Of a stretch of 64,000 nucleotides of DNA, positions 4,580-21,573 are shown in pieces. Position 1 is the first letter of the stretch, and every line of letters begins with the position of its first letter. The DNA comes from Dimorphilus gyrociliatus (Eukaryota; Animalia; Annelida), in contig CAJFCJ010000009.1 of NCBI GenBank assembly GCA_904063045.1, positions 2,542,968 through 2,606,967 of the forward strand, written 5' to 3'. The notes below the pieces were generated by a model, which did not search any database, was not told where the DNA came from, and saw only the letters and a list, made by a program, of their open reading frames with translations. The position numbers and the translations under genes were made by a program.

Positions 4580-5413
4580 TTAAGCGTTGTTTTCCTTTTC
4601 TTCAATTTTCTTTTGAAGTTTTGCAACCATCTTTTCGGATAATACTGTTATTTGTCCTTTAGTTTCCACAAAGTTAGTAAAACCTTCAACAGATTTCTGT
4701 CCAGCGTATTTATAACCTCCTCCTATATTTCCTTTTGGGTATAGGACGAACATTGGTACCTAAAAGCATGTAAAAATAATTGAAAAAGATGCGAATGTTC
4801 TTTTTCCTTTTACCTTTACTTCACTTTCGTTTAATAAACTATTTTCATTCAAATTTACTTTAGCAATAACGACGTCTGATCGGTTAGCGAAATGCTCTCC
4901 TACACTCTCCCAAATGGATTTCATCTTTTCGCAATGAGTACATCCAGCTGTATAGAACATAACAAAAATATGCCTTGATGGTTTGGTTGCTAATTGACGA
5001 AATTTCTCTCCATTTAAATCCCAAACTGATCCAGAACTCCAATCTTCTGATAGAGTTCCACTTGTTGCAAACTTTTCGATATTTTCGTGCTTGTGTGGAC
5101 GAAGTAAAAGCTGTACTGGTGGACGATTTGGCATTGGTATTTCATGAAGGGTTTCTGGTATCGACGTAGCTTTTACAGTTGGTAATATCGAGGGCTTATT
5201 CGCGAATTGCTACAATACAAATTGATAGGATTATGTATTAAATATCAATAATAACACTAAAAAGATATTAAAATTAACCCATAGTTGTTCCCATCTACAA
5301 ATTCTTTGTGTTATTCCATAACCTCTATTTTCCTTTGATTCTCTCTTTGCCCGATAATAGAGAGAGCTAACTCCTATAATTCCTAAAAAAGATGCTCTTC
5401 TAAATATGTACAT
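4580..5413 (-). CDS. Single thioredoxin-domain (PDI-like) protein, 3 exons, CxxC = CTHC
   Basis: Exons ~5413-5279, ~5209-4811, ~4760-4580. Contains HIFVMFYTAGCTHCEKMKSIWESV...DVVIAKVN and a VPMFVLYP cis-Pro region. Basic/hydrophobic N-terminus; no KDEL. Confidence 0.78.
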
Positions 5414-5570: not shown

Positions 5571-5790
5571 CTGGAAACTGAGATTTTTGGAGTGGCTAAT
5601 TGAACGGAAGAGGATGTTCAGAGATTTCTTACTGATTGCGAGTTAAAAGAATATAAACAACAGTAAATATAAAATGTTATTGATTGTTTACTCTACTTTA
5701 TCTTCGATTTTGTTTATAAATTAGCTTTCGAAAATGTAACGGTAAAAATTCTTTTACTCAACGCGGAAGAATGACCTTTGCCTTCCAACA
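5571..5790 (+). pseudogene. Decayed SAM-domain relic of an ARM-TIR-SAM paralogue
   Basis: Reads VAN*TEEDVQRFLTDCELKEYKQH|FRKCNG, with an intron at 5663-5724 in the same position and phase as the SAM intron of the intact paralogues. The conserved Trp codon is TGA and similarity is lost after CNG. Confidence 0.7.
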
Positions 5791-6043
5791 ACTGATTGCA
5801 TGAAGTTGGAGATAAATTTGAAGAATCTACATTGAGAGAAATATGGAAGAATTATTAAGGGTTTAACTGTTGTTTGCAGAGGTTTATATTATAGTTGAAA
5901 AGAGCATAAGACATATTGTATTACATGAGAATATACAATGTTTTGTTGAATAGTGTAATTTACAATCATAAACAATAAATATACTGAAGATGGCGTTAAA
6001 AACACTTTTGCTATGGTTATTAAGTAAACAATTTGAACTATCA

Positions 6044-8091
6044 ATGGGTTGTGGAGCAAGCACTCAAAATGCTAATAAACCTGGTAAATCTAAGAATTTA
6101 TATAATACTCAGTCTTTAAAAAAGTCTAAAGAAGATCTACAACTGGTGTTGGAAGCAGCTGAATCCTTTACTAACGAAGAATGGAAATCTTCAAAGAGTT
6201 CTTCTATAAAATTACACTTGAGATGGCTGGGATATTGCGATGCAAAAATTAAAGCTGCAATAATAAATGACTCTAAATTTTCAAAAGTACTTCCAAAAAT
6301 GTATATTGAATTAATAGAAAAATTTGCAATTTGTGAAGAAGATCCAGTGTATGACATTGTACGCTCCATTCAAACAGTATTATGGAATGGTACGGATGTC
6401 AGCGAAGAGTTCTGTAAAGTAGCCTTAGATAGCAAAGTTCTTCATTTAATAATTGAAAAAATACTCCCGCATTGGAGATTTGAATCAAAAACTCTTATTG
6501 ATGAAAGTTTTATAACTCCTGGCTTATCTACTATGCAGAGACTACAATTTATTAAAGGTGGTTTAGGAATAATGCATAACATTCTCAGATTGGAAGACGA
6601 GTCGAGAAAGATTGTCAGAGATATTGGTGGAATTGAAGCATTCAAAAAACTGTTAATTGTTGATGAACCTGATAAGTTAGATATAATGATAGAAGCTAAA
6701 TGCAATATTATTCTGGCATATCTTATCAAAGAGGATGAAGCTGATAAAGTCGATACAAATAGTAGGGTAATTAAATTTATATCATTCTTACTTGACGGCG
6801 CCTTCAAAAGTGAAACTCACCGTTTCAAAAAATATGGATTTGCTGTTGATGAGACGCTAATGGCTATGAATAAATTAGCCATTAGTGAAAATAATAAAGA
6901 ACTTCTTGCCGATCATATTCCCCTTTTAATAGAAGTGTTAAAACATCCACATAATCCTAAAGAACAAGAATATTCGGCGAAATGCCTTTGGACATTATCA
7001 TTTAATGAAAAGTGCGTACGTGTACTTGAATCGGAAGAAAATTTAAAAACTATTCAATCTTTAAAGAAAACTGGTAAGAATGCAGCTATAAAACGTTCAG
7101 CGGAAGGTATTTTATGGCAAATAGATCAAAAAAATAAAAAACAAGATGATATAGAAGTTAATAATAATTCTAAAGAGGGTCATATAATGTTAAGTTATCA
7201 ATGGGCCTATAAAGCAATTGTCTTCAAAATACGAGATTTTCTTAAAACAAATGGATTTCACGTCTGGATTGATGTTGAATCTATGGGTAGGCTATTTATA
7301 ATCTCTGTTTTTCCATCATTCAACATATAATCACTCTTTCTTTCTAACAAGAGGGTTCAACTCTTGATTGTATGGCGAAAGCTGTTGAAAATTCTTCCGT
7401 AGTTTTAGCTTGCTTCTCACAAAAGTATAAAGATAGTCCGGCTTGTAGAAGTGGTATGATTTATAAATTTCATTCATCTCTTTTGCATCTTTTTTCCTGA
7501 AATATTACTAAAATAGAGGCAGAGTACGCTTATAGAACAAATAAGGAAATTATACCGATTAAAGTGGAAAGAGATTACATAGCTGACGGTTGGTTGGGTA
7601 TACTTTTGGGAACAAAATTATGGATTGATTTTGCAAAGCCTGAAAAAGTAAATGCGTCATTTGAGCAGCTATTAGCAATTTTAGGGAGCAAAGGAAAGCA
7701 TCCTCAAAAAGCAAAAGCAATTGCAAAAGAAACTACATCTACCTTACAGAGTCAACCAGCGAAATCTTATGTAAATACCGATAGTTCTAGTATTGAAAAT
7801 TGGACAGAAGCGGAAGTGGGAACATTTTTTAATGATATTGGTTTGGGGAAATATGCAACACAGTATATATTCCAATACTACTATTATTATAATAATTGAA
7901 AATATCGAATTATTCGTTTATTGTCACTTTTTCATTTCAGTTTTCAAAGTTGTAATGGTAGCGGTCTTTTGGAACTGAAACAAATTCGAGAAATAAGCCT
8001 AGAATTCTTTTATTCAACATTAAAAAAGGAATTTAGCATGCCATTGACTGATTGTATAAAATTGGCAACAGCGTTGAAAAAGATGTATTAA
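6044..8091 (+). CDS. ARM-TIR-SAM protein, paralogue 1 (~613 aa)
   Basis: Exons 6044-7286, 7352-7453, 7517-7862, 7941-8091 (1842 nt, open frame). ARM-like helical repeats (DETLMAMNKLA; AKCLWTLSFN), TIR_2 (HIMLSYQW...VWIDVESM...CFSQKYKDSPACRSEAEYA...GWLGILLG), SAM-like C-terminus (IENWTEAEVGTFF). Start MGCGAS preferred over the upstream ATG at 5990. Confidence 0.88.
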
Positions 8092-8721
8092 TATCAATAG
8101 AGAAATTTGTAAAAACTTTATTCTCTCATTCTTTCTTAATAAAACAAAGTATTATATGTTGAAGCACAGTTAACTGTTATAAAAAGTTGGGTATTCTTAT
8201 TAAGAATTAAGTGAACAATTATCAATTAAGAAAATCTTCAGAAGATTGAATTACTTTACAATTATCAACTGTTTCTAAATATAAACGTGAGAAATATGTC
8301 AGTGGAACGGTAGTTCAACCTAATCATTCCAATCAACTTATTTTTTATTGCGAATTACAGTAATATTAAATGATTTATCTCTCCTTGAGAGCTGTTTTCC
8401 AACTTATTTTCCCTTTTATTCCTCTCTCTCTCTCTTGTTCCAAGTATCCAAAATTTCAAATATCAAGTGTTATAGTGCAAAGAAAATATGAATTTATCCA
8501 AATTATCTTATCAATTTCTAGTGTTCAAAATAAGTGAATAACTATTAATTTTACCGATTACGTAAAAGTCAATTTATCAGAATTATGCAATTATTGTCAT
8601 TGTAATTTTCTGCTATTATTACAAAAAGTATTTACAAACTGGCAATACGTTCTGTTGGATTTTTCTCCTTAGATAAACAACATCTTCTATTGTTTTGTTG
8701 TCATTTTTAATCAGATATTGA

Positions 8722-10876
8722 ATGGGGTCAAACTTGAATAAACTGGCAAGGAATAGCGAAGAATTAAATTCTTCTGATAGGATATTATTAAGTTATCAAT
8801 TGGATTATCAGTCAACTGTCAAAAAAATAGGAAATTTTCTTATTTCCGAAGGATATGATGTATGGATTGATAAAGAATCAATGGGGAAAGAACAAAATAA
8901 AGTAGAATGCAGGTCGGAGGCCATTGAAAATGCAGATGTAATTGTTGTCTGCTTTTCTCATAAATATACATATAGCGATATTTGTAAAAGTGGTACGTAA
9001 GTTTTAATAATAAACTTTTACAACATATTAACATAATTCTATAAATAGAAGCAATGTACGCTGTTCATCTTAAGAAGAAGATTATTCCAATTAGATTAGA
9101 AATAAACTACAAACCTATTGGATGGTTAAATTCTCTAATTATTATTAAACCTTATATAGATTTTTCTATTGAAGAAAACCGCAATATGGCACTTGAAAAA
9201 CTTGTATATTCTATAAGATCGGAAAATAAGATTAGCATCTTTAAGAGTAGTAGAAATCCATTCAAAAATTATTATTCAAATGTTAAAAATTCACTTAGAA
9301 TACAAGTTGAACAAATTGAAAAGTTAAAGGAAGAAGATTTGAAGATAAACATGGAATTTAATAGAGGAATTTTCACACAATTTCTTCTTCTATGTAACAA
9401 AGTTTTCATTCCTCAGGAAAAGATTTTCAATGATAGAGAAATCGTTGATAGAATACCGGAATTATTTTTAAATATTCATAGAAAATATCTCCTTGGCAAC
9501 GAAAACATCGTATTTACTGTTTGTTATGATGTATCGTTATTTTTATTGAACGGAACGCATTATTCTAATTATTTTGGAAGAAAGATTTTTGAAGATGGTT
9601 GCATAGAGTTTATTGTTAAAAATATATTGGGGAGCGATCTTTTATCTTTGAGCGCTCTGGACACGGAAGTAAACTCATCCTCTACTCTATCATCTAAACA
9701 GGTGATAAAATTAGTTAGATGTTATCTAGGAACGTTATATAATATCTTAAGATTAAATAAAGACTTACGAAAATCTATAAGGAACTTTGGTACAATCGAT
9801 GAAATAAACAACAAAATTGAACAACTTAGCAAGTATAAAGAAATTGGAAGTCCTCTTATCATTAAAGCTACTTGCTTAATGCTTTTGACTTATCTGGTTG
9901 ACGATGTAGAAAGGGAAAAACTTAAAGCGAGTCACGAAATGTTAACATTTATGGCTGCCGCACTTGAAAGTGCACTTGATCATGAATGCCACCAGTCAAG
10001 TTACGGTTTCTACGCTGAAGAAACTCTTCATACAATCGTTCAATTGGCCATTGACGATGAAAAGAAACAATTAATGATTGAATATATCCCTCTATTGTTT
10101 AGATGTATTAAGGAAGCTTTAACTGAAAGAGAGCAGAGGCTCTCATTAAAATGTATTTACACTTTATCATTTCACGAAGAATGCGAAGAGCTTATTCAGC
10201 TAAAAAGGAATATTCGATTATTAAAGACAATTTGCGAGAAGGGTTTAAGTGACAACATCAAACAACTTGCGAAAACTGTTCTTTACGAGATTAACCGACG
10301 AAACAATGTACAACAGATTAATACTATTCCTAATAAACCAATTAACGGTCATATAATGTTAAGCTATCATTTAAATAACCAAGAAATTGTTTTAAAGATA
10401 AGTAACTATTTGAAATCCAAAGGATACTCTGTATGGATTGATGTTGATGAGATAAGTGAGTCGTTTTCGTAAAGTATAATAGTTTATTTATTATATGTAT
10501 CAATTAAGGAGATCATCCGCTCGATTCAATCTCTGAAGCAATTACAAATGCACGTGTCCTTCTTGTATGCTTCTCAAGAGAGTATAGTCAGAGTAATACC
10601 TGTCGAAGTGGTAAGATGCTTTAAATAGATAGAAAAAGTCAATCATTACAGGAATGTTAAAAAAAAAAAACAGAAGCCGATTATGCATTCCGACTACACA
10701 AGGATATGATTCCTTTGAAATTGGAGAAAAATTACTCTGGAAGTGGATGGTTAGCTAGAGTATTAGACTTAAAATCAACTATTGATTTTTCGGATGATAA
10801 TGATCATAAATCTTCAATTGAAAGTTTATTAGGACAACTTGGATATGAAGGTTTAAAAACAGAAATTAAAGATTAA
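8722..10876 (+). CDS. TIR-ARM-TIR protein, paralogue 2 (~660 aa, no SAM)
   Basis: Exons 8722-8992, 9049-10455, 10509-10610, 10674-10876 (1983 nt, open frame). N-terminal TIR (ILLSYQ...VWIDKESM...CKSEAMYA...GWL), central ARM region, C-terminal TIR (HIMLSY...CRSEADYA...GWL), then stop. Confidence 0.85.
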
Positions 10877-10988
10877 ACATTGATAGAATATTAAGAGTAT
10901 TTTACTATTTTAATATGTTATTTTTGTATTATTTAATCCTATTCAAATTAAAGCAATAATTAAAATCTATCAGTTTCAATTTGCAGAT

Positions 10989-13433
10989 TTAATATCCCTG
11001 TATATCGTCATTACAACAAAATTCCACAATAAGATGACCCGGTATAGGTTGAAAACCTTGTTTCTCACCACTTATTAAATCTAATTTTTTCTTTTTCATA
11101 TCTTCGCTATTTATATCACGTCCATCAATTCTTCCCTCTCCAATGACTGTACTTCGAAAAGTTCCATGTTCTAGAATCTTTTATTTTTGGAAATAGTATC
11201 ACTTTAACTTTGTTAAAAGATACTTTTCTCTTACCTGAATAACTATTGGTTCTGTAACTTTTCTACGATAGAAGAGACAACGAATATCGTATTTACAATT
11301 GAATTTACCAGAATTTCTCATTAATTCTTTAGCTTTTGTCGGTACTCCTTGTACTCTATCCTTTTCGCTCTTAACAACAATAAATGTTATAAAATTATCC
11401 GCTCTTGCATTACTCGTATCAGGTATCTCTAGACCATCAACCTCTTTAATGATAACTCTTGTCGCCAAATTATATGGAGCTGTACAGCAATTTAATTGTT
11501 CAGGAACTGGAATTTTTAATTCTCTTTTGTTGTTAAAATAATAAATTCACTAGTTTTAATATGATGATTGCTTAAGAGAATATCTTATGTTTGTATTTTG
11601 ATTACCTTGGTGTCATTCCAGATGCTGTGTAAATCCTTAAAAGGAACTTGCCAACAATATTAGGTTCAACAGTGCTTGGTACTAAGATATATCTACCTCT
11701 TAGTAATGAGCTTTTAAGATAAACGCTTCGAACTCTTCTATATTTGGTAACAACTATTGTCTCACCTTTCTCGTGTATTCTATATTTTCTGAAAAGAGAT
11801 TTGTGTAAAGGTTATTATAGGTTAATAATACTTTTCGATTCATTTTTTTACTGGTTATCAGCTACCCTCATTATATGAAATCCAATAGCTCTGATTGAAG
11901 CTCCAACACTCATATCAGGTCTTATATCGGTAGCCTCTAAGGAGAATGTTGCTCCTTCGTGAACAGCCGCAATTTCAAATAGAAATTGAGGATTGTCAAG
12001 AAATGAACTATGCTTTTCATTACCACCGCTTCTATCCCATTTGGTTCCCTTTGCTCCGTGTGTCCAGCTACTATGGAATGTAGTTTCCTTATATGATTTG
12101 ATTGTTGTTAAAAATGATGTATTGACAAAATGATTAATATAAACATGAGTAAAATTTGTTAAAAAATCATCTAGATCCATCCAAAATTCACTTTCATTAT
12201 TATACAATATACCCATTGCATCCCTATCTTTTTGAGATAAATACGACATTTCTCTTGATTGCTCACACCATCTACCTTTCCAGTCTCTATTACCAAGAGG
12301 ATTTCTTAACCGTATTAGATAAATTGTATCTGTGTGAAGAGGATCTTGTAATCTCTTATCAACAAATGATTCTACGACGGAAGTTATAACATAGCCAAAA
12401 CCCTTATATAAACCATTTGGGGATATTTTCAATTTTTCAGATTGAGGACATTCTATTAATGTTGTCATAAGGGCATTGTTCCTATTAGCATCCAAAAGAA
12501 TTCTAAATAGTTGGTGGCGATATTGATCTTGAGATAAATTATAATCTTCGAAAAGTATAGATTGAGCAACACCACCTGTAAAATCTACCAAAGTATTACA
12601 AGGATTGCTCAAGTGCATAGTCTCGTAGTCTCCATAAAGTCTAGAAGAACGTAATAAAGGATTGAAGATTAAATAGGAGGGATATATGAATTTATTAATT
12701 TACTTTGCATAGGCTTTTTGGCAAAGTGACGCCCAAAATTCATTTCTACTTTTTGAATTACAATAGAGCAGCTTACCATTTTTAGTAGGAAGTAAATCAT
12801 CAATTACAACTTGATACCATTTACCTAATCTCCAGAAATTAAATTTAAAGATACCTGCATATTCGTTATCATTTGTCCATTCTTGCTTTTTACAGTCTGG
12901 TATTACCTGTATAGTTTCATTCAATTTCATTTTAGAATATATAAGATATATAATATACTTTATAAAGCATCTTTTGATTAGTTAATAGGGCACAACAGCA
13001 GGATGCAAACCATCCAGATCCATACATTCCTTCGTGTATATCATCTGTTGTAGCACCGTCAACCACTAATCTTGGAACTTTACACAACTCTTTCGGTCTC
13101 TTCCACTCAACTCTTGTATCAATTTTACTGTAGAACATTGATTTATTATTGGCGGGAAATTCTGGGTCAACAAATAATTCTCCTTTAGAAAGTAGTCTCT
13201 TCTTAAGCTCATTATATTTTTGATTACGGAACGCTAAGATTTTACTCAAACCTCCAACTCTATTTTGAACATCACCCTATGTTTATTTTTTATTAGAATA
13301 TAAATAGAAATAATCAATTAATATTAAAAAATAATAAGAAGAAAGGCATAAAAAAAGTAGATCCTTAATAGATTCTGTTGGATATTATTACCTCGCTACC
13401 TCCATAAACATGAATATTAGTCGAATCTTCCAT
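10989..13433 (-). CDS. Calpain-5/6 (TRA-3-type) protein: CysPc, domain III and C-terminal C2; catalytic Cys and His replaced
   Basis: [89 protein letters not shown], followed by a C2-like tail. About 7 exons. The QGxLGDCW motif reads EGMYGSGW and GHAY reads GFGY. Confidence 0.88.
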
Positions 13434-15067
13434 TACAGTTTATTTATAGGATAAAATATCTATTACATATAGTTTAATAAATATATTATTAAAAATTATT
13501 TATTAAGATTTTTAATCAACTAATATAAACAATGTTTAAACTTTTAAATTGTTAAAAATATGGTAATTTAAATAAAACATAAATAAAGAACGATATTAAA
13601 GATATATTAATAAACTGAATATATAGAAAGATATAGAGATATGAAGTTAAAAATAATTTTATTATTTGAATGTTTTCGTGTAACACTTTTATTTCGATTT
13701 ATAAAATTTAAAAGACTTTTTATTCGTTTCACTATTTTTTTTGCACCTATTTGTTAAATTATTTTATAAAACAACACAAAAGACAAGCGCATAATTGACA
13801 CTTCTCTTCAAAATCACTTACAAGTACTCTATATGAGTTCTATCTACTCTGCCCACGTCTAAGGGTATATAAGGAGGTATAACGCAACGTGTCAGTGCAG
13901 TTCGAAATGGAGATGGACGAATAGACATGAAAGTGGTATCGTGGCTTTAAAGATGTTGTTTGTGAAGTATTGGCACTTGCTTGCTTAGACTTTAAGGAAT
14001 CTTCGATCACTGAAAGTGTCATCTTCGAACTGCCAATTTGCGAATGCCAAAAAAACAGAAAGAAAACAAGCAACGAAAAGTCTAACACAGTTGGAAAGCT
14101 TGAATAGCAAAGCCTTTCTAAAGCCAAATGGGAACGACGACGACAACAACATGAATCATAGAATGGTAGATCTATAAAGAGATTGCTGAAAACAAACTAT
14201 TGAGTGTAGAGGAATACAAAAGGTCTTGTGAATATATTACATATGAATCTATGGATTGTTAAAGTATAATGATTACGTTATTCGATGTAATAAGGTAATT
14301 TTTCTGCGTGGAACGTGTAAAATGTTCCACCTCGGAAAAATTGGGGAATTTGGTAATAGCGAAGATAAGTATATTTCGAAGTGGACAAATCATTCTAAGA
14401 TTATAAGTCCTGTTCTTTGGAGGGTGCAATCTTATGTAAGGCTGAAGATTTGCTTTTTGAGGTATTCTAGCTGGCAACGGTTGACATGTGGTTATTAGAG
14501 AAAGAGCCAAAAAAGTAGCTTCTAACGGCCATATCGTCGAATTCAGGTGATGTATTTCCTGTCGCAACCAGAGTCAATGATATATATGTGAAAAAAAATT
14601 ATATGTATATATTGTTATTAAATAATTGTGGCATTTTAAAAAAAAATACAGAGCTGCGGTAGCAAAAACTTGTGAATTTTTTTTAATTTAATAGGGAAAT
14701 CGTTTCCCGAAAACAATGTAGATTATATAATAATTTAAGAAACAGACTACAACAGTGGTAAATCTACTTAGTGCAAATGTTCTTCTCTCCTTCATTTAGT
14801 ATTTCTTACTTGGTCGACAAATATCTTTAAAACTTCTGATTTACTATTTGATAAGAATGTTTGTTGCATTCAATTTCTTGATAATCCATTATTTTATTTA
14901 GTTTCTTGAATAATGCTTTTATTTCTTAATGTCTTAACGACGCTAAAATTAGGATAATTAGGGCAATTTAGGATATTATGCAATCTAATATTCTCGGCGA
15001 AGCCTTATTTGAAAAAAATACAGATGGCGCTTGATGATGTTATGACAACAAATACTAATACACCGTT

Positions 15068-17186
15068 ATGGGCTCAGCTCCCAGTAAAAAAAATTTCACA
15101 CAACCGAAATCGAGCTCCGATTCTAGTGACAATAACAAACCAGAAGATTTAGATTCAATCACAGATATTGCTGTTGACTCAGGACCAGACGAATATGAGG
15201 CTGAAAAAATTCCAATAATAGAAAGGCTCAAACTAGTTCAACCTTTTGATAGAAAAGCTTGGTTGGAATATGCCAGTCAAAGTAAAACCGTTTTTGGAGA
15301 TTTTAGGATTCTATGGGAACAAAACGTAAAGGCTCAACGAAATGTATTTAATGATATAAAAATAGTGAGCGATATACCTAAATTATTTAATACTGTGCTC
15401 GAAATGTTCTTCTTAGATGATGACAACTTTTCATTTCCTATTGTTAAAGATCTCACAGGATTTATGCATAACGCTTCACACTTTTCTTCAAAATTTTCCA
15501 AGATGATTTTTAATGAAGGATGCGTTGATCTTATCATGAACAGAATCATTTCAAATTGGAGATTAGCCATTGAAACTCTCTTTGAAAGTGACTTTAACGA
15601 AAAGTGTGGCATAAGTATTAACGATAGATTTCAAGTACTATTCGGATATTATGGAATACTTCATAATGTAATAAGACATAATAGTGAAACCCGAATTCCA
15701 TTAAGGAGTCTGGGACTTTTGGAAAAGGTGAACACGTGCATTGAAAGCTTGAATAAAATAAAATCTATTGCACCTGCAGAATTCTTGAAACTTAGTTGCT
15801 ATTTTATCCTGGCGTACTTGATTACGGAAGGTGAGCAAGATCTTGTGGAGACGAGTCGGCTAACTCTTACATATATTGTAACTATACTTTCAAGCGCTTT
15901 AAAATATGAGAATCATCATTCATCGGATTTCGGTTTCGATTCAGAGGAGACTCTTCTAGCAATCAATCAATTAGCTAAGAGTGATAAAAATAAAGAAATT
16001 TTGGCAGGACACCTTAAATTAATATTTCAGGCAATGAATGAAGCTCTAAATGAAACTGAACAACAACATGCTTTGAATTGTCTTTGGACTCTATCATTCA
16101 ATGAAAAATGTAGAGATTATATTAAAAGACCGACAAATATAAGAAACTTAGAGAATGTGTCTAAACAGGGAAAAAGTATAGCTTGCCAACGATTAGCCAA
16201 CAATGTCCTTTTTGAAGTGAGAAAAGCTGATAAAATTATTGAAGAAATTAACACACAGGCTGGTGAGATCAAAGGTCATGTTATGCTGAGCTATAGTTGG
16301 AAATTTAAATCAATCGTTTTTAAAATTCGTGATTTTCTAAGAAGCAAACAATACAATGTTTGGATTGATGTCGATTCTATGAGTTTGTAGTAAATTTAGC
16401 TTTTTGATTATTAATATTTTAATAGTTTTCCTTCTTCCTATAAAAGAGGGTTCAACGATTGATTGTATGGCTGAAGCTGTGGAAAATTCCAGCATTGTTA
16501 TTGTTTGCTTTTCGCACAAATATAAGGAGAGTACGCCGTGTAGAAGTGGTAAGGTTGAACTTATAAATGATTAAATGATCGCGTCTCTATAAATATCTTC
16601 ATTTTATACTATTAGAAGCCGAATATGCTTATCATCTTAAGAAAGAGATTATTCCAGTTAAAGTTGAGAAAGATTATAAAGCGGATGGATGGCTCGGTTT
16701 TATAGTAAATACAAGGCTGTGGATTGATTTTACAAAATCAGAGGTCAGCGTTGCGTATGAAAAACTTTTAAATCAATTAGGATCTAAAGGAAAGCGAAAT
16801 AATAATGCCGTCCCACGAAAAGCGGTAATACAAGAGATTAAAGCTGAACCTTCATACCAATCCAACACCAATTCTGAAACAAAAAGTGTAAAAGACTGGA
16901 CAGAAAAAGATGTCCAAAATTTTATTATCAATGAATGTGGATTGAAAAAATATGGTTATCAGTAAGTTTCGTTCTAAACAAACCGACTAATTAGAAGTTT
17001 ATATAAATTTACTGTAATTATTCTCGTAACAGCTTCAAAAATTGCTCTGGTCCCGAATTATTAGAGCTAAAAAGACTAAGTGAATTAAGTCCGGGATCGT
17101 TTTACTCTTCTATAAAAACCGATTTAGGATTACCGTTAATCGACGGTTTAAAATTATCAACAAATCTACAGCGATTAGATTGTTAA
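15068..17186 (+). CDS. ARM-TIR-SAM protein, paralogue 3 (~638 aa)
   Basis: Exons 15068-16382, 16447-16548, 16616-16961, 17033-17186 (1917 nt, open frame). Same motifs and intron positions as paralogue 1; starts MGSAPS. Confidence 0.88.
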
Positions 17187-17695
17187 AAAAGATAATTACT
17201 TCTGTTAATAAGGAAGCTAATTTTCTCTTTTTTAATAAAAAAGTTCTTTTCAACAGATAAGAAATATAAAAGGTTATTTAACTATCTTTTTCAGTAATCT
17301 TTTCTTTATTCTGTTCATTGTATTATAAATAATGTAAATTTTTTTGTCATATTTAATATTTTCATATAATTAAATAGAATACTCAATCGATGACTCACTG
17401 CCTTAAGTATATATACCGTATATATATATATATAAATTACGCTATTAGTCTATTGATTGGTCAGAATAATAAATAATTAATTGGGTGAGTCATCCAATTG
17501 ATTATTGAACTTGTAAGCAGGATTACATTATCAACAATGTTAGAAATGAAAATAAGCAATCGGAATTCCTCTTTGTAATGTCGGTATATAGTCATTTAAG
17601 GCCCACGACACAGTTTATTCACTCGTATTTTTCTCTCTAACACGAAGGATTTCACAAAGATTTTTTTATAAAGAAGTATTAATATTTACATTGAA

Positions 17696-19658
17696 ATGAA
17701 TATTAGAGAAATAAAGAATACCATAAAATTTAAAATTCAATTAGCTAGACAGTCCACGAAATCAGATTGGCCGGAACAGATAAAGAATTTCGCGACAGAT
17801 GGATTATTCGTAGCTTTACTGACGGAATGGAAAACTAGACAGCTACCTCTTGAAGACATATTTTCTAATACTGATTTAATTCGTGACTTACCAACGTTAT
17901 TCATAGATCTCCACGAAAGATTTTTGATTAAGGAAACCGATTTTATATGCTCAGCTATTGAAGATATATGTATATTTTTTCTATCGGCAACACATTATTC
18001 TAGTGTATTTTGTAAAAGAATTTTTCAAGATGGTTGTATTGAATATATGATAGAAAAAGTATTATCTCATTCATTATTATCAATTGATAACTTGTTAAAT
18101 CCGCAAAAAGTAAAAAATAATAATTTACTCAATTTTAAAAGCGCCTTGATATTTCGTTATATTGGTATTCTACATAATATACTCAGACTGAATGAAGATC
18201 TAAGAATTCCAGTGAAAAATCTTGGTACATTAGATTTAATGATTGATATGATACATCAATCAGTTTATTATACAGAGTCCGAAGCTAGTAGGTTCCTTAA
18301 AGTTTTTTGTTACATAACTTTAGCATATTTATTGGATGAAACTGAAGTTAATCTCATGCAAACTTGTTTACAAACTTTAAATTTTATAAGGGATATGCTT
18401 AAAAGAGGTCTTGAAAAGGCTGACCATCAGTCTGAATATGGTTTTTATGTTGATGAAACTCTACACGCGATAAATCAATTGGCGAAGAATGATGATAATA
18501 AGAAATTAATGAAAGGTTATATACCATTATTGTTTAGGGTGATAGAACATTCTAATGATGTTGAGGAACGATGCGCTTTAGATTGTTTATATACTCTCTC
18601 TTTTGATGATGAATGTAAAACTGTAATAAAGAAAGAAGGTTATATAAGAATATTACAGAAGTTGTCTGAATATCATACAAATACTGATAGAAAAGATATA
18701 GTTAAAGCAATTCTTTGGGAAATTGATGAAAAATACAGAAAGGAGTTGACACTTTCAAATAAACAATCGAAAAAATTTGATTTTATGCTTAGTTATCAAT
18801 GGCAATATCAAAAGGTTGTGATGAAAATCAGCAATTCTCTCAAATCACTAGGATATAAGGTTTGGTTAGATATTGAACAAATGAGTAAGTAATCGTAAAC
18901 ATATTTAACTTATTATCAATAATTATAATACTATAAATAAAGATGGTTCAACAAATGAAGCTATGGCGTATGGTATTGAAAGTTCAACGATGTTTATTAT
19001 GTGCTTTTCGAGATCGTACAAAAATAGTAACAACTGTAGAAGAGGTATCTATATATCCATTTATGATTTTTTCATTATTATTTCTTAAATAGGCTTAAAT
19101 ATGAAATAGACTGTTGATTTTTAGAAGCGGTATACGCCAGTGCCCTAAATAAGGTGATAATTCCTTTAAGAATGGAGAAATACTATCAGGGGACTGGATG
19201 GCTTGGAATAATAATTGGAGATAAGTTATGGGTAGATTTTTCAGATTTAGAGAAATATCAATCATCTTTTAAAGGTCTTACGCATCAAATAGATATCCTG
19301 AAACATAAAGATCATAGCAATATTCCGATTACCACTAACCCTTCACCTATAGAATCAAACAATCCTTTAGAGTGGCCTAAAGATAAGGTTCATGATTTTA
19401 TTAAAAACGATTGCGGGTTAAAGGAATACTCTTATCAGTAAGTTGTTGAGTTATTAATATATTTATACATGTATAAGTAAAATGATGATCATTTATCATA
19501 GCTTCGAGGATCTTACTGGCGCAGAATTATTAACGTATAAAACTCTATGCCAAGAAAATCTTAACAATTTTCTCTTATCATTAAAAGACGATTTGAAAAT
19601 CCCGTTTAAAAATGCAATGAAATTTTCAACTAGTTTAAGACAGTTAAAAACTGATTAA
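17696..19658 (+). CDS. ARM-TIR-SAM protein, paralogue 4 (~586 aa)
   Basis: Exons 17696-18884, 18943-19044, 19125-19437, 19502-19658 (1761 nt, open frame). TIR FMLSYQW...CRREAVYA...GWLGIIIG; SAM PLEWPKDKV. The true 5' end is uncertain because there is no Gly2. Confidence 0.85.
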
Positions 19659-19967
19659 AGACACTTTTTATATTCAGTATAAACATTATACTGTATATAA
19701 ATACAGAAGGAATAGTATCAATTGAGTATTGTTTTATTAATTCTTTTTTAAGAATAGGCCTATTTCGTAGTTGAGTAGATTCAATTTTGGCACCTAGATT
19801 TATTTTATGCGTGTTGTGTTCTTGCGTTACCACACTTGCATTGTAACAAGTTAGAAGACAAAAGGTGATTATTGTTAAATCTGTAAAGAAAAAACATACA
19901 AAAATAGGTTATTTTAATAGAACACTTTTAATAAAGAGAAAAGTTAGTTAATTTTGAAATATTTATT

Positions 19968-21200
19968 ATGGGTTTGGCAACTAGTTGTATGGTTAGAAAT
20001 AGAAGAATACGATCGGAGTATGAAAATGAAATTTATTTAAATAAGCCTAGCGACAGCGATGATAATTCATTAGAAGAATATGATATTGAATATTACGAGG
20101 AAACGAAATGCGCATTCAAGAGAAGAATGGTACAAGCTTTAAATTGGAGAAGAGAAGATTGGATAAGAAGTTATGGTGGTGAATTGGTTGATAATCTTAT
20201 ATTTTTAGAGTTTATTTGCAATTGGAAGAAAAATTCAATACCCTTGGAAGTAATTTATGCAGATGAAGATATATTTGAAGACTTACCAGAGTTATTTATT
20301 AAGTTAATTAACGTTTGTTTACTATCTGAGGAAGTGTACATTTATCCATTATGGGATTTTGGTATTTTTCTTCAAAAAGGTACCAGCGTTTCGTCGGAAT
20401 TTGGTAGATTACTCTATGATCAACAATGCGTTGAATTTCTTATAAAAACAGTACTTCCTCATCATAAACTTGCAATCGGATCTTTTGAAGATGACGTTGA
20501 ACCTTGTGGATTTTTGATAATACTTTTCTATATAAGAGCTATTCATAATATTGTTATGTTACACGATGATTTAAGAATGCCTGTTAGAGATATTGGCGCA
20601 CTTGACGAGATAAGTAAGAAACTTGACCCGCTAAAAAGAATTAACTACGATAATAGCGATGAACTAAAATTATTTGAAGCAATTAGTAAAATGACATTAT
20701 CTTATTTAATAAAAGAGGGAGAAGATGATCGTTTTCTAACAAATGCTAATAGTCTTTGTTTCATACTGAAAAATCTTATTGAAATAGAGAAAAGTTCTCA
20801 TTATAATGCGCTAAGCAAAGATGAGAAATTAATTAAAGAATCATTTTATATCGAAGCAGACGAAATACTCTTTTCAATTAATCAAATAGCACAAAATGAG
20901 AAATACGACGAATTATTCTCAGAATTAATTCCAGCTTTATATAGATTCATTAAAGATACTACGAAAATAAGAGACAAGAAATTAGCATTAGATTGCTTAT
21001 GGACTCTATCCTTTTACGAAAATTCTAAAAAGGTATTCAAGAGTCAAAAACTTTGTGAAAAATTGCATAAAATCTCAAGGAAAGCCTCAAATGTTACTGT
21101 TCAAAAATCTGCTGAACGAATTGTTAGAGAACTTAGTAAGAAAAATCGTGCTAGTGAAAGTAGTTCATTGTCTAAGCACAACGGAAGCTTAACCTATTAA
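19968..21200 (+). CDS. ARM-only paralogue 5 (410 aa, single exon, no TIR or SAM)
   Basis: Aligns to the ARM exon of paralogues 1-4 (DEILFSINQIAQNE; LDCLWTLSFYE) and stops at NGSLTY*, where the others begin the TIR. Starts MGLATSC. Confidence 0.82.
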   Translation: MGLATSCMVRNRRIRSEYENEIYLNKPSDSDDNSLEEYDIEYYEETKCAFKRRMVQALNWRREDWIRSYGGELVDNLIFLEFICNWKKNSIPLEVIYADEDIFEDLPELFIKLINVCLLSEEVYIYPLWDFGIFLQKGTSVSSEFGRLLYDQQCVEFLIKTVLPHHKLAIGSFEDDVEPCGFLIILFYIRAIHNIVMLHDDLRMPVRDIGALDEISKKLDPLKRINYDNSDELKLFEAISKMTLSYLIKEGEDDRFLTNANSLCFILKNLIEIEKSSHYNALSKDEKLIKESFYIEADEILFSINQIAQNEKYDELFSELIPALYRFIKDTTKIRDKKLALDCLWTLSFYENSKKVFKSQKLCEKLHKISRKASNVTVQKSAERIVRELSKKNRASESSSLSKHNGSLTY

Positions 21201-21573
21201 AAATCTTGTTCAATTAATACAAAACTTGTCTTATTATTAATTAGATTATACTTCAAACGTTAGAGTTTAGATATACGAAAATTCCAAATTACATCCAATC
21301 TAAACAGGAACAATTATTCCTCACATAAGATAATTGTAAGAAACAAATAATCTTACCTCCTGATACTTTACGTAATATGATTAGATAATGGTTATTCTAT
21401 ATTCAAAAGCTGAATAATTCATCTATAATTTAAATATTTAAATATTACAAAAACATACCTACATACACACGCATACGTGCATAGATATTACATAAACATA
21501 CACGAACATATACATACATAAATTTGCATATATATATATCTAAATTTGAATAATTTGAATAAGAAGCAAAACA

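Follow-up and report, generated by a model that had tools for sequence, protein, structure and literature searches.

Cleavage of NAD+ by TIR domains connects bacterial, plant and animal immunity, and SARM1 is the main well-studied animal TIR NADase. In SARM1 and C. elegans TIR-1 the domains follow the order ARM-SAM-SAM-TIR, and the N-terminus of SARM1 carries a mitochondrial targeting sequence. The TIR domains of the CRISPR-associated bacterial Cat1, of SPARTA TIR-APAZ and of the plant proteins RPS4, RPP1 and Roq1 cleave NAD+ on oligomerisation; for such NADase activity a conserved glutamate is necessary, but not sufficient. These prokaryotic and plant enzymes are similar in fold to the TIR domains considered here, but their partner domains are wholly different: the proteins of this study belong to the metazoan cytosol and have neither a nucleotide-binding switch nor a CRISPR or Argonaute partner.

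A further set of proteins, already catalogued under the name “ARM-TIR” or conserved invertebrate TIR proteins, forms an ancient family that extends from Cnidaria to Cephalochordata. In the passage of PMC6321704 that cites Gerdol et al. 2017, an adaptor or regulator role is hypothesised for the ‘ecTIR-DC’ proteins, and a paper on the Aplysia immunome counts ARM-TIR proteins among possible novel TLR adaptors. The initial annotation of the locus had noted related ARM-TIR proteins in other invertebrates and knew of no functional description of such a cluster, and this agrees with our results: homologues occur in many phyla, and no enzymatic, localisation or oligomerisation study of any family member was found in the searched literature.

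Here we describe an array of such genes in the annelid Dimorphilus gyrociliatus, which is a local, old tandem expansion of the ancient metazoan ARM-TIR-SAM family of cytosolic proteins. Other family members share the collinear order of ARM, TIR_2 and C-terminal SAM and are likewise cytosolic; Dimorphilus differs from them in its five-gene local array, which includes TIR-ARM-TIR and ARM-only forms. The cluster illustrates well a family that is already catalogued and does not represent a novel type of system.

Layout and transcription of the array

The array lies at 5.5-21.3 kb of the 64-kb window, that is, of the whole stretch of DNA analysed (Table 1). Its five co-oriented paralogues, A-E, match one another at E 1e-28 to 1e-112 (tblastn), and no additional copies were detected by tblastn in the rest of the window. 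They arose by local duplication, accompanied by the loss or gain of domains. Between B and C the array is interrupted by an unrelated calpain-type gene on the opposite strand (Pfam E 2.6e-29 and 2.8e-18), whose minus-strand intron joint 11177/11235 (CT..AC) is present in RNA contigs.

Table 1. Positions in the window of the paralogues, their exons and neighbouring features
Feature	Position	Strand	Description
SAM relic	5592..5832	+	Dead remnant of the 3' part of a former paralogue, upstream of A; SAM half-exons at about 5592-5654 and 5746-5832
Gene A	6044-8091	+	613 aa, ARM-TIR-SAM; starts MGCGAS
Gene A exons	6044-7286, 7352-7453, 7517-7862, 7941-8091	+	3/3 introns RNA-confirmed
Gene B	8722-10876	+	660 aa, TIR-ARM-TIR without SAM; starts MGSNLN
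Gene B exons	8722-8992, 9049-10455, 10509-10610, 10674-10876	+	Introns RNA-confirmed
Calpain-type gene	approx. 10989..13433 (~11.0-13.4 kb)	-	Peptidase_C2 and Calpain_III; unrelated to the ARM-TIR-SAM family
Gene C	15068-17186	+	638 aa, ARM-TIR-SAM; starts MGSAPS
Gene C exons	15068-16382, 16447-16548, 16616-16961, 17033-17186	+	Introns RNA-confirmed
Gene D	17696-19658	+	586 aa, ARM-TIR-SAM; without MG start
Gene D exons	17696-18884, 18943-19044, 19125-19437, 19502-19658	+	Introns RNA-confirmed
Gene E	19968-21200	+	410 aa, ARM only; starts MGLATS
Possible decayed TIR alphaA/betaB remnant	21278..21352	+	Out of frame, directly past the E stop codon; suggestive only

The gene models given here are RNA-verified exon structures. 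Each of the 13 predicted coding introns appears as a GT..AG joint among the transcript contigs of RNA run X2, the supporting contigs being 100% identical to the window, and all five genes were expressed in that run. The contig of gene A starts at 6018, downstream of an alternative ATG at 5990. The five co-oriented paralogues and the SAM relic, as well as the four architectures (three ARM-TIR-SAM genes, one TIR-ARM-TIR, one ARM-only and the orphan SAM relic) proposed in the initial annotation, were borne out.

Might the locus instead hold fewer, longer genes? The public model DgyrCDS7910 (P0003) merges C and D into a single protein of 1195 aa, ARM-TIR-ARM-TIR-SAM, by joining C residues 1-625 to D from about residue 17. 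A read-through from D to E is likewise conceivable, in that one contig extends from exon 3 of D past the D stop codon and across the intron at 19863-19918, which lies in the 5'UTR of E in run X2, into E itself. However, the last exon of C has its own in-frame stop (17184-17186), and the SAM of C aligns to its end with those of A and D. Furthermore, the D contig is collinear from 17374, with neither a joint from C nor any upstream coding exon of D. A transcript contig that spans two genes is no proof of a single transcript, and because the D stop codon falls within the D-E contig, E is still a separate ORF. We regard a fused gene as very improbable, and the separate models of C and D correct the public one. 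The public protein P0008 is identical to gene E.

Relatives, derived members and decayed pieces

A family search returned 436 cluster representatives at E<=1e-3, with members in Pocillopora, Lingula, Watersipora, Branchiostoma, Antedon and Diadema, and also in Ptychodera, Styela, Owenia, Argopecten and Haliotis; no vertebrate protein was found among the 20 matches checked for source. Full-length collinear homologues, all uncharacterised, are present in corals, brachiopods, bryozoans, molluscs, annelids, echinoderms, hemichordates, tunicates and amphioxus. For example, the alignment of gene A with the Ptychodera protein P0015 runs from end to end (32% identity over 586 aa), and that with the Owenia protein P0010 covers 529 aa (33%). 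Its orthologue in another sample (P0001) is 49.5% identical, starts MGAGAS and has the same thioredoxin neighbour; because this orthologue persists with its neighbour at such a level of identity, the duplications are old.

Among the paralogues, pairwise identity is 24-33% in the ARM region, 39-67% in the TIR and 30-44% in the SAM. The contrast drawn in the initial annotation between diverged ARM and conserved TIR regions thus stands in its direction, but strong TIR conservation is limited to the A-C pair (67%). Across the whole family, identity to gene C is about 40% in the TIR versus about 25% in the ARM, and since the difference is family-wide, it is not evidence for accelerated sensor evolution in this cluster.

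We considered that the cluster might consist mostly of decaying duplicates, with one or two functional copies and the rest expressed pseudogenes. The SAM relic upstream of A is dead: its first half (VAN*TEEDVQRFLTDCELKEY) aligns to VKDWTEKDVQNF... of C, a stop codon stands in place of the SAM Trp that is near-invariant in the family, and RNA depth in run X2 is zero. The half at 5746-5832 is 48% identical to the SAM of A over 29 aa (tblastn, E 3.8e-4 against the window and 2e-7 against the subregion). Gene E is cut at the start of its TIR, the ORF ending within the would-be strand betaA (…HNGSLTY*); its branch is the longest in the tree, and it retains only 13 of the 35 ARM positions conserved in the family, a loss that is as compatible with relaxed constraint as with a decoy role. 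The sequence just past its stop codon matches the TIR weakly in tblastn (E 0.3; 32% identity across 25 aa) and contains a stop codon; the match is suggestive only. In gene B, both TIRs (B1 and B2) keep the C-x-x-E Glu, but they retain just 21/32 and 23/32 of the conserved positions and have lost the SYxW Trp, the BB-loop Gly and the G-S-T motif; no SAM-like sequence was found 3' of the B stop codon.

Against decay on this scale, the ORFs of A-D are complete (586-660 aa), their splice sites are canonical and confirmed by RNA, and the four genes have comparable support from transcripts; E retains an intact ORF and an MG start, and the orthologue of A survives with conserved synteny elsewhere. 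In addition, because the ARM regions are so weakly identical and yet the genes are intact, the paralogues have long been maintained. It is therefore improbable that most of the array is pseudogenic. Genes A, C and D are its conservative members: conserved TIR positions number 32/32 in A and 28/32 in D. All three keep the G-S-T motif of the BB-loop region, a region that enzymatic TIRs need to assemble their active sites. Genes B, with two divergent TIRs and no SAM, and E, which is weakly conserved, are derived.

The three modules compared with SARM1

Genes A, C and D contain the same three domain types as SARM1 and TIR-1, but in the order ARM-TIR-SAM and with one SAM. Genes A-E are not SARM1 orthologues, as the initial annotation had held from the same differences in order and SAM number. 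Its description of the proteins as SARM1-like is upheld by the shared modules and by a candidate catalytic Glu in all six TIRs, but not by the ARM region, which has no sequence match to that of SARM1.

Pfam searches of the Dimorphilus proteins alone gave TIR_2 as the only significant domain (E 7.5e-44 on P0003, which covers C and D; for B, 4e-10 in exon 1 and 1.1e-7 in exon 2), the TIRs of A and B being checked by exon-wise matches and alignment. The ARM was sub-threshold and the SAM undetected, and these two of the three expected domains became significant only through the family profile or predicted structure. In the AF2 model of gene C (pLDDT 80.7), the predicted ARM superhelix spans residues 40-393 and is followed by a TIR (404-527) and a helical SAM (569-618), the SAM region being modelled as a confident helical bundle. 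Residues 40-393 fit the ARM domains of beta-catenin and APC with Z about 19-20, and the ARM part of the family profile matched Vac8, ODAD2 and beta-catenin with E values of 1e-20 to 1e-40. Judged by profile and model, the ARM region is a canonical superhelix of the beta-catenin/APC/Vac8 type.

How far does the likeness to SARM1 extend? Human SARM1 is the top Foldseek match for the whole gene C model (E 5.6e-6), although with a global TM-score of only 0.29. In the structural comparison that placed the ARM region with beta-catenin and APC, the 50 matches of highest Z are all canonical ARM proteins and do not include SARM1. No sequence similarity between the SARM1 ARM and the family ARM was detected in the family profile search; full-length SARM1 chains meet the profile in only two stretches, with no third above threshold. 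The better of these is the SAM: profile positions 545-618 match SAM1 of SARM1/TIR-1 (chain 409-474, 6e-11), and homologues match SAM_1/SAM_2/SAM_3. Because the family ARM has no sequence match to that of SARM1, the NMN/NAD+-sensing role is not transferable from SARM1, and because the single SAM sits after the TIR, the octamer geometry of SARM1 cannot be assumed.

The N-terminus also differs from that of SARM1 in bearing a myristoylation motif. When a Met-Gly start was scored as G-{EDRKHPFYW}-x-x-[STAGCN]-{P}, and also as MGxxx[STAGCN], genes A, B, C and E fitted, as did about 55 of 153 retrieved homologues (about a third), and D did not. The MGCGAS start of gene A is a predicted N-myristoylation, possibly also palmitoylation, motif.

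The family TIR profile found its best sequence match in Cat1 (2e-9), followed by a bacterial SEFIR protein (8e-5), RPS4 (2e-4) and, distantly, TIR-1/SARM1 (about 1e-3), with weaker matches to Hydra TRR-2, Roq1, RPP1 and TRAF3IP2. The Glu of a C-(R/K)-x-E motif is present in 6/6 TIRs, two of them in B and none in E, which has no TIR. In alignments this C-R-x-E motif corresponds to CWDE in Cat1 and to CVRE in RPS4, and an S-x-x-C-x-x-E motif is likewise aligned between the family TIR and Cat1. Across the family, the Glu is conserved in 98%, the Cys in 98% and the Arg in 96%. The alignment to human SARM1 ends before this Glu, so that the match to E642 is not direct. An intron splits the codon of the Glu; the searched ARM-TIR and ecTIR-DC literature made no mention of this intron or of the N-myristoylation start.

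Proposed function of the family

Taken as a whole, these features make NADase activity of the family TIRs plausible. We think it fairly probable that the array is an old tandem expansion in which A, C and D encode self-associating TIR enzymes tethered to a membrane, working like SARM1 without being SARM1. Anchored at a membrane, they would oligomerise through the SAM, which would gather the TIRs, form their active sites and allow NAD+ to be cleaved, resulting in NAD+ depletion and/or a signalling nucleotide. The ARM superhelix might keep the TIR inactive, or might recruit a peptide ligand or partner; ARM autoinhibition or metabolite sensing in the family would be pure analogy with SARM1. B and E may, speculatively, modulate A, C and D by hetero-association; the likeness to paired sensor/helper/decoy NLR clusters that the initial annotation suggested is likewise speculative.

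Alternatively, the TIRs could be non-enzymatic scaffolds and the proteins Toll/IL-1-type adaptors or regulators acting through TIR-TIR, SAM-SAM and ARM-peptide contacts, in line with the adaptor roles put forward for ecTIR-DC and Aplysia proteins. The predicted TIR fold lends itself to either role: its TM is about 0.72-0.77 to the TIRs of SARM1 (about 0.75), Hydra TRR-2 and MyD88, and the MyD88 scaffold TIR, compared as filaments at TM about 0.73, fits about as well as the enzymatic ones. Canonical ARM repeats, moreover, are typical peptide-binding scaffolds. However, the family TIR profile reached no TLR or MyD88 TIR at E 0.1, while enzymatic TIRs (Cat1, RPS4, TIR-1/SARM1, Roq1 and RPP1) are prominent among its matches, and a pure scaffold hardly explains the 96-98% conservation of the C-R-x-E Glu, Cys and Arg across phyla. 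We find a purely scaffolding role doubtful, although scaffold and enzymatic roles are compatible with each other.

A bolder extension of the enzymatic reading, which we offer tentatively and consider rather unlikely in its full form, is that ARM-TIR-SAM proteins are ancient lipid-anchored, ARM-gated NAD+ hydrolases of innate immunity or regulated cell death, older than the cnidarian-bilaterian split and separate from SARM1, and that B and E control A, C and D by hetero-oligomerisation. If true, such control by B and E would give animals an equivalent of the paired or helper receptors of immunity. The family offers a route to the question of whether ARM-gated TIR enzymes besides SARM1 act in animals, and Dimorphilus, with its 74-Mb genome, short genes and five adjacent variants that include natural “domain deletion” forms, provides a compact and tractable set in which to pursue it.

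The tandem array and its transcripts

The window is AT-rich (GC ~30%), and large plus-strand ORFs of 398-472 aa are listed in it at 5990, 9054, 15068, 17696 and 19968. The first four each terminate within a TIR domain, in its first strand and helix (TIR_2 matches), and when the three plus-strand frames were read, the rest of the TIR and the C-terminal parts were found in short downstream exons. We assembled the gene models manually, guided by GT..AG sites and by alignment of the paralogues. Genes A, C and D encode ARM-TIR-SAM proteins, B has two TIRs (B1 and B2) flanking its ARM region, and E consists of an ARM region only. In a tblastn comparison of the five proteins with the whole window, matches between copies had E values of 1e-28 to 1e-112, and the sole additional match was a short SAM-like piece.

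Coordinates of the five paralogues and neighbouring features in the window, with splice joints found in contigs of the public sequencing run X2
Feature	Position	Strand	Product or basis	Joints in X2 contigs
Thioredoxin-like ORF	4760-5134	-	identified by eye	
SAM-like piece	5746-5832		29 aa, tblastn	
Gene A	6044-7286, 7352-7453, 7517-7862, 7941-8091	+	613 aa	7286/7352, 7453/7517, 7862/7941
Gene B	8722-8992, 9049-10455, 10509-10610, 10674-10876	+	660 aa	8992/9049, 10455/10509, 10610/10674
Calpain-type gene, between B and C	10989-13433	-	Peptidase_C2 + Calpain_III (Pfam)	
Gene C	15068-16382, 16447-16548, 16616-16961, 17033-17186	+	638 aa	16382/16447, 16548/16616, 16961/17033
Gene D	17696-18884, 18943-19044, 19125-19437, 19502-19658	+	586 aa	18884/18943, 19044/19125, 19437/19502
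Gene E	19968-21200	+	410 aa, single coding exon	

The X2 contigs are 100% identical to the window and omit exactly the predicted introns, all of which are GT..AG; X2 therefore derives from RNA, and each of the five genes is transcribed. The depth of X2 over the SAM relic, a dead fragment upstream of A, was zero. Because the transcript contig of A begins at 6018, between the in-frame ATGs at 5990 and 6044, the latter start (MGCGAS) is favoured, and because the contig of D is collinear from 17374, D has no upstream coding exon. A single RNA contig (19292-21169) runs from exon 3 of D through exon 4 and the stop codon, across a GT..AG intron at 19863-19918 and into E, which points to transcriptional read-through or to UTRs that overlap. 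A minor GT..AG joint (19230/19292) removes 61 nt within exon 3 of D, in the C-terminal part of the TIR; the frame would shift, and this may be an unproductive isoform. We also observed that the stop codon of D is overlapped by ATTAAA.

On the evidence of gene models, tblastn and transcripts, the tandem cluster of co-oriented paralogues claimed in the initial annotation is real and was well described. The array is not strictly contiguous, since the minus-strand calpain-type gene separates B from C. This gene, too, is transcribed; a minus-strand intron lies at 11178-11234. In the public annotation, the D. gyrociliatus protein P0003 (DgyrCDS7910; CAD5119282.1, 1195 aa) is composed of C residues 1-625 followed by D from about residue 17, and the public model thus joins two genes, bypassing C's own stop at 17184-17186; in the listed transcript contigs, C and D appear as separate genes. 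A second public protein, P0008, is identical to E. A bdelloid rotifer source, suggested at first by the AT-rich composition, short introns and a Didymodactylos match, was discarded on the strength of these two D. gyrociliatus proteins.

Domain identities and the TIR motif

The domain names proposed from the sequence were recovered by different routes. Pfam called TIR_2 on P0003 with an E value of 7.5e-44, whereas single-sequence searches gave only sub-threshold ARM matches, and neither SAM nor ARM was called by Pfam when the C-terminal regions of the Dimorphilus proteins, E or the ARM parts alone were searched; the SAM and ARM names therefore depend on the profile of the family (the invertebrate ARM-TIR-SAM proteins) and on structure, both of which bear them out. 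A profile of 60 family sequences matched designed ARM proteins, Vac8, ODAD2/ARMC4 and beta-catenin at 1e-20 to 1e-40, and residues 40-393 of the AF2 model of C (pLDDT 80.7) gave Z scores of 19-20 to the ARM domains of beta-catenin and APC. Against full-length SARM1 chains, the same profile had two matching stretches, the better being the SAM, and profile positions 545-618 matched SAM1 of SARM1/TIR-1. Homologues from Owenia, Ptychodera and others matched SAM_1, SAM_2 or SAM_3 in Pfam, and the AF2 models have a confident bundle of four to five helices at the SAM.

SARM1 was not among the best 50 structural matches by Z. In a Foldseek search with the whole C model, hSARM1 ranked first (E 5.6e-6), yet the TM score was 0.29. 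A high rank with a low TM score is expected where the three domain types are shared but arranged differently.

What kind of TIR do these genes encode? The second TIR intron is in phase 1 in every TIR and interrupts the Glu codon of a C-(R/K)-x-E motif. A profile of 51 family TIRs matched the CRISPR-associated TIR protein Cat1 best (E 2e-9), followed by a bacterial SEFIR protein (8e-5), plant RPS4 (2e-4), C. elegans TIR-1 and human SARM1 (about 1e-3) and, more weakly still, Hydra TRR-2, Roq1, RPP1 and TRAF3IP2; no TLR or MyD88 TIR was found in this search at an E value of 0.1. The family motif S-x-x-C-R-x-E aligns with SDWCWDE of Cat1 and SVWCVRE of RPS4, and following the plant TIR literature we take the Glu of the aligned C-x-x-E to be the catalytic Glu. 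The main rival to an enzyme, less probable but still plausible, is a non-enzymatic adaptor function. The AF2 TIR-SAM model (pLDDT 88) has target-normalised TM scores of 0.72-0.77 against the TIRs of SARM1, Hydra TRR-2, SPARTA and MyD88 alike, so the modelled fold is that of a generic TIR, and fold alone does not tell enzyme from scaffold.

Divergence and derived copies

The initial annotation described diverged ARM regions beside conserved TIRs. The contrast itself stands: pairwise identity among copies is 24-33% in the ARM and 39-67% in the TIR (67% for A-C only), with 30-44% in the SAM. It is not specific to the cluster, for family-wide identity to C is about 25% over the full length versus about 40% in the TIR, and it is thus no evidence of special ARM diversification here. 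At such ARM identities between paralogues, synonymous sites are saturated.

When the TIRs were scored at 32 positions conserved in at least 85% of 49 non-Dimorphilus members, A retained 32, C 29, D 28, B2 23 and B1 21. In both TIRs of B the SYxW Trp is lost, as is the Gly-Ser-Thr motif of the BB loop; C-x-x-E and GWL are kept. At 35 conserved ARM positions, the counts were 25 for A and for C, 23 for D, 18 for B and 13 for E.

How might the unusual copies have arisen? First, residues 13-649 of B are collinear with residues 392-1095 of P0003, that is, with the C-TIR to D-ARM-D-TIR junction of the fused model. The first TIR of B has no first TIR intron but has the Glu-splitting one, and nothing above chance was found in a search for a SAM downstream of B. 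We infer that two tandem copies gave rise to B, through a fusion or a deletion between them. Second, the ORF of E ends in HNGSLTY*, where its paralogues have GHIMLSY, and E is without the near-invariant N-x... N-K motif; from this ending and the ARM losses, E is an expressed copy that has been truncated and is under weak constraint. An out-of-frame TIR-like match beyond its stop (E 0.3) hints faintly at a TIR remnant. Third, the two SAM half-exons persist in the SAM relic, where the near-invariant Trp has given way to a stop codon, and the search for a TIR remnant upstream of it found nothing above chance.

Age, distribution and probable function

A word-indexed protein search with exon 1 of C gave two matches only, and an exhaustive search revealed the family. 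In a maximum-likelihood tree of 70 proteins (quick search, midpoint root), the five window genes formed a group of 15 rows together with Logan proteins and another Dimorphilus paralogue, and the split between this group and the 55 proteins from other phyla had an SH-aLRT of 99%. Within this group, A pairs with P0001, a protein from sample ERR14224706, with 97% support. The gene for P0001 adjoins a minus-strand Thioredoxin (PF00085) gene, and the thioredoxin-like ORF lies immediately upstream of A, also on the minus strand; the thioredoxin-A gene pair thus appears to be syntenic in another species. From the pairing and the shared neighbour, A is old and orthologue-bearing, and the duplications took place before those species diverged. 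In a related ARM-TIR-SAM gene, P0004 (L001:1384-3300; SRR23372229, 29% GC), the first TIR intron is absent, as in B1, and the phase-1 Glu-splitting intron and the SAM intron are kept. A further D. gyrociliatus paralogue, P0014 (DgyrCDS14462), lies on a separate 145-kb contig.

Named members, all "uncharacterized" or automatically named, come from Pocillopora, Lingula, Watersipora, Branchiostoma, Antedon, Diadema, Ptychodera, Styela, Owenia, Argopecten and Haliotis. An N-myristoylation pattern after MG is fitted by A, B, C and E, not by D, and by about 55 of the 153 retrieved proteins, many as MGCxxS and including members from Styela, Ptychodera, Owenia, Lingula, Branchiostoma, Haliotis and Pocillopora. 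The motif looks like an ancestral feature of the family and suggests membrane tethering.

A protein class termed "Evolutionary conserved TIR-domain containing" was reportedly defined by Gerdol et al. in 2017. In two reports, such proteins are common among invertebrates and apparently missing from vertebrates, and an adaptor or regulator role is hypothesised for them (PMC6321704; PMC5549309). The literature searched yielded catalogues and SARM1 papers only and no functional or biochemical study of the ARM-TIR-SAM architecture, in agreement with the earlier statement that no functional description was known.

The cluster is a lineage-specific expansion within an already catalogued family. The structures of the genes and their expression, the identity of the domains, the conserved motifs and the spread across phyla are direct observations. 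On the best-supported interpretation, A, C and D would act in the manner of SARM1 although they are not its orthologues. They would be membrane-tethered TIR enzymes, presumably lipidated, that oligomerise through their SAM and probably cleave NAD+, with a canonical ARM domain that may gate or target the enzyme; B and E may have a regulatory role.
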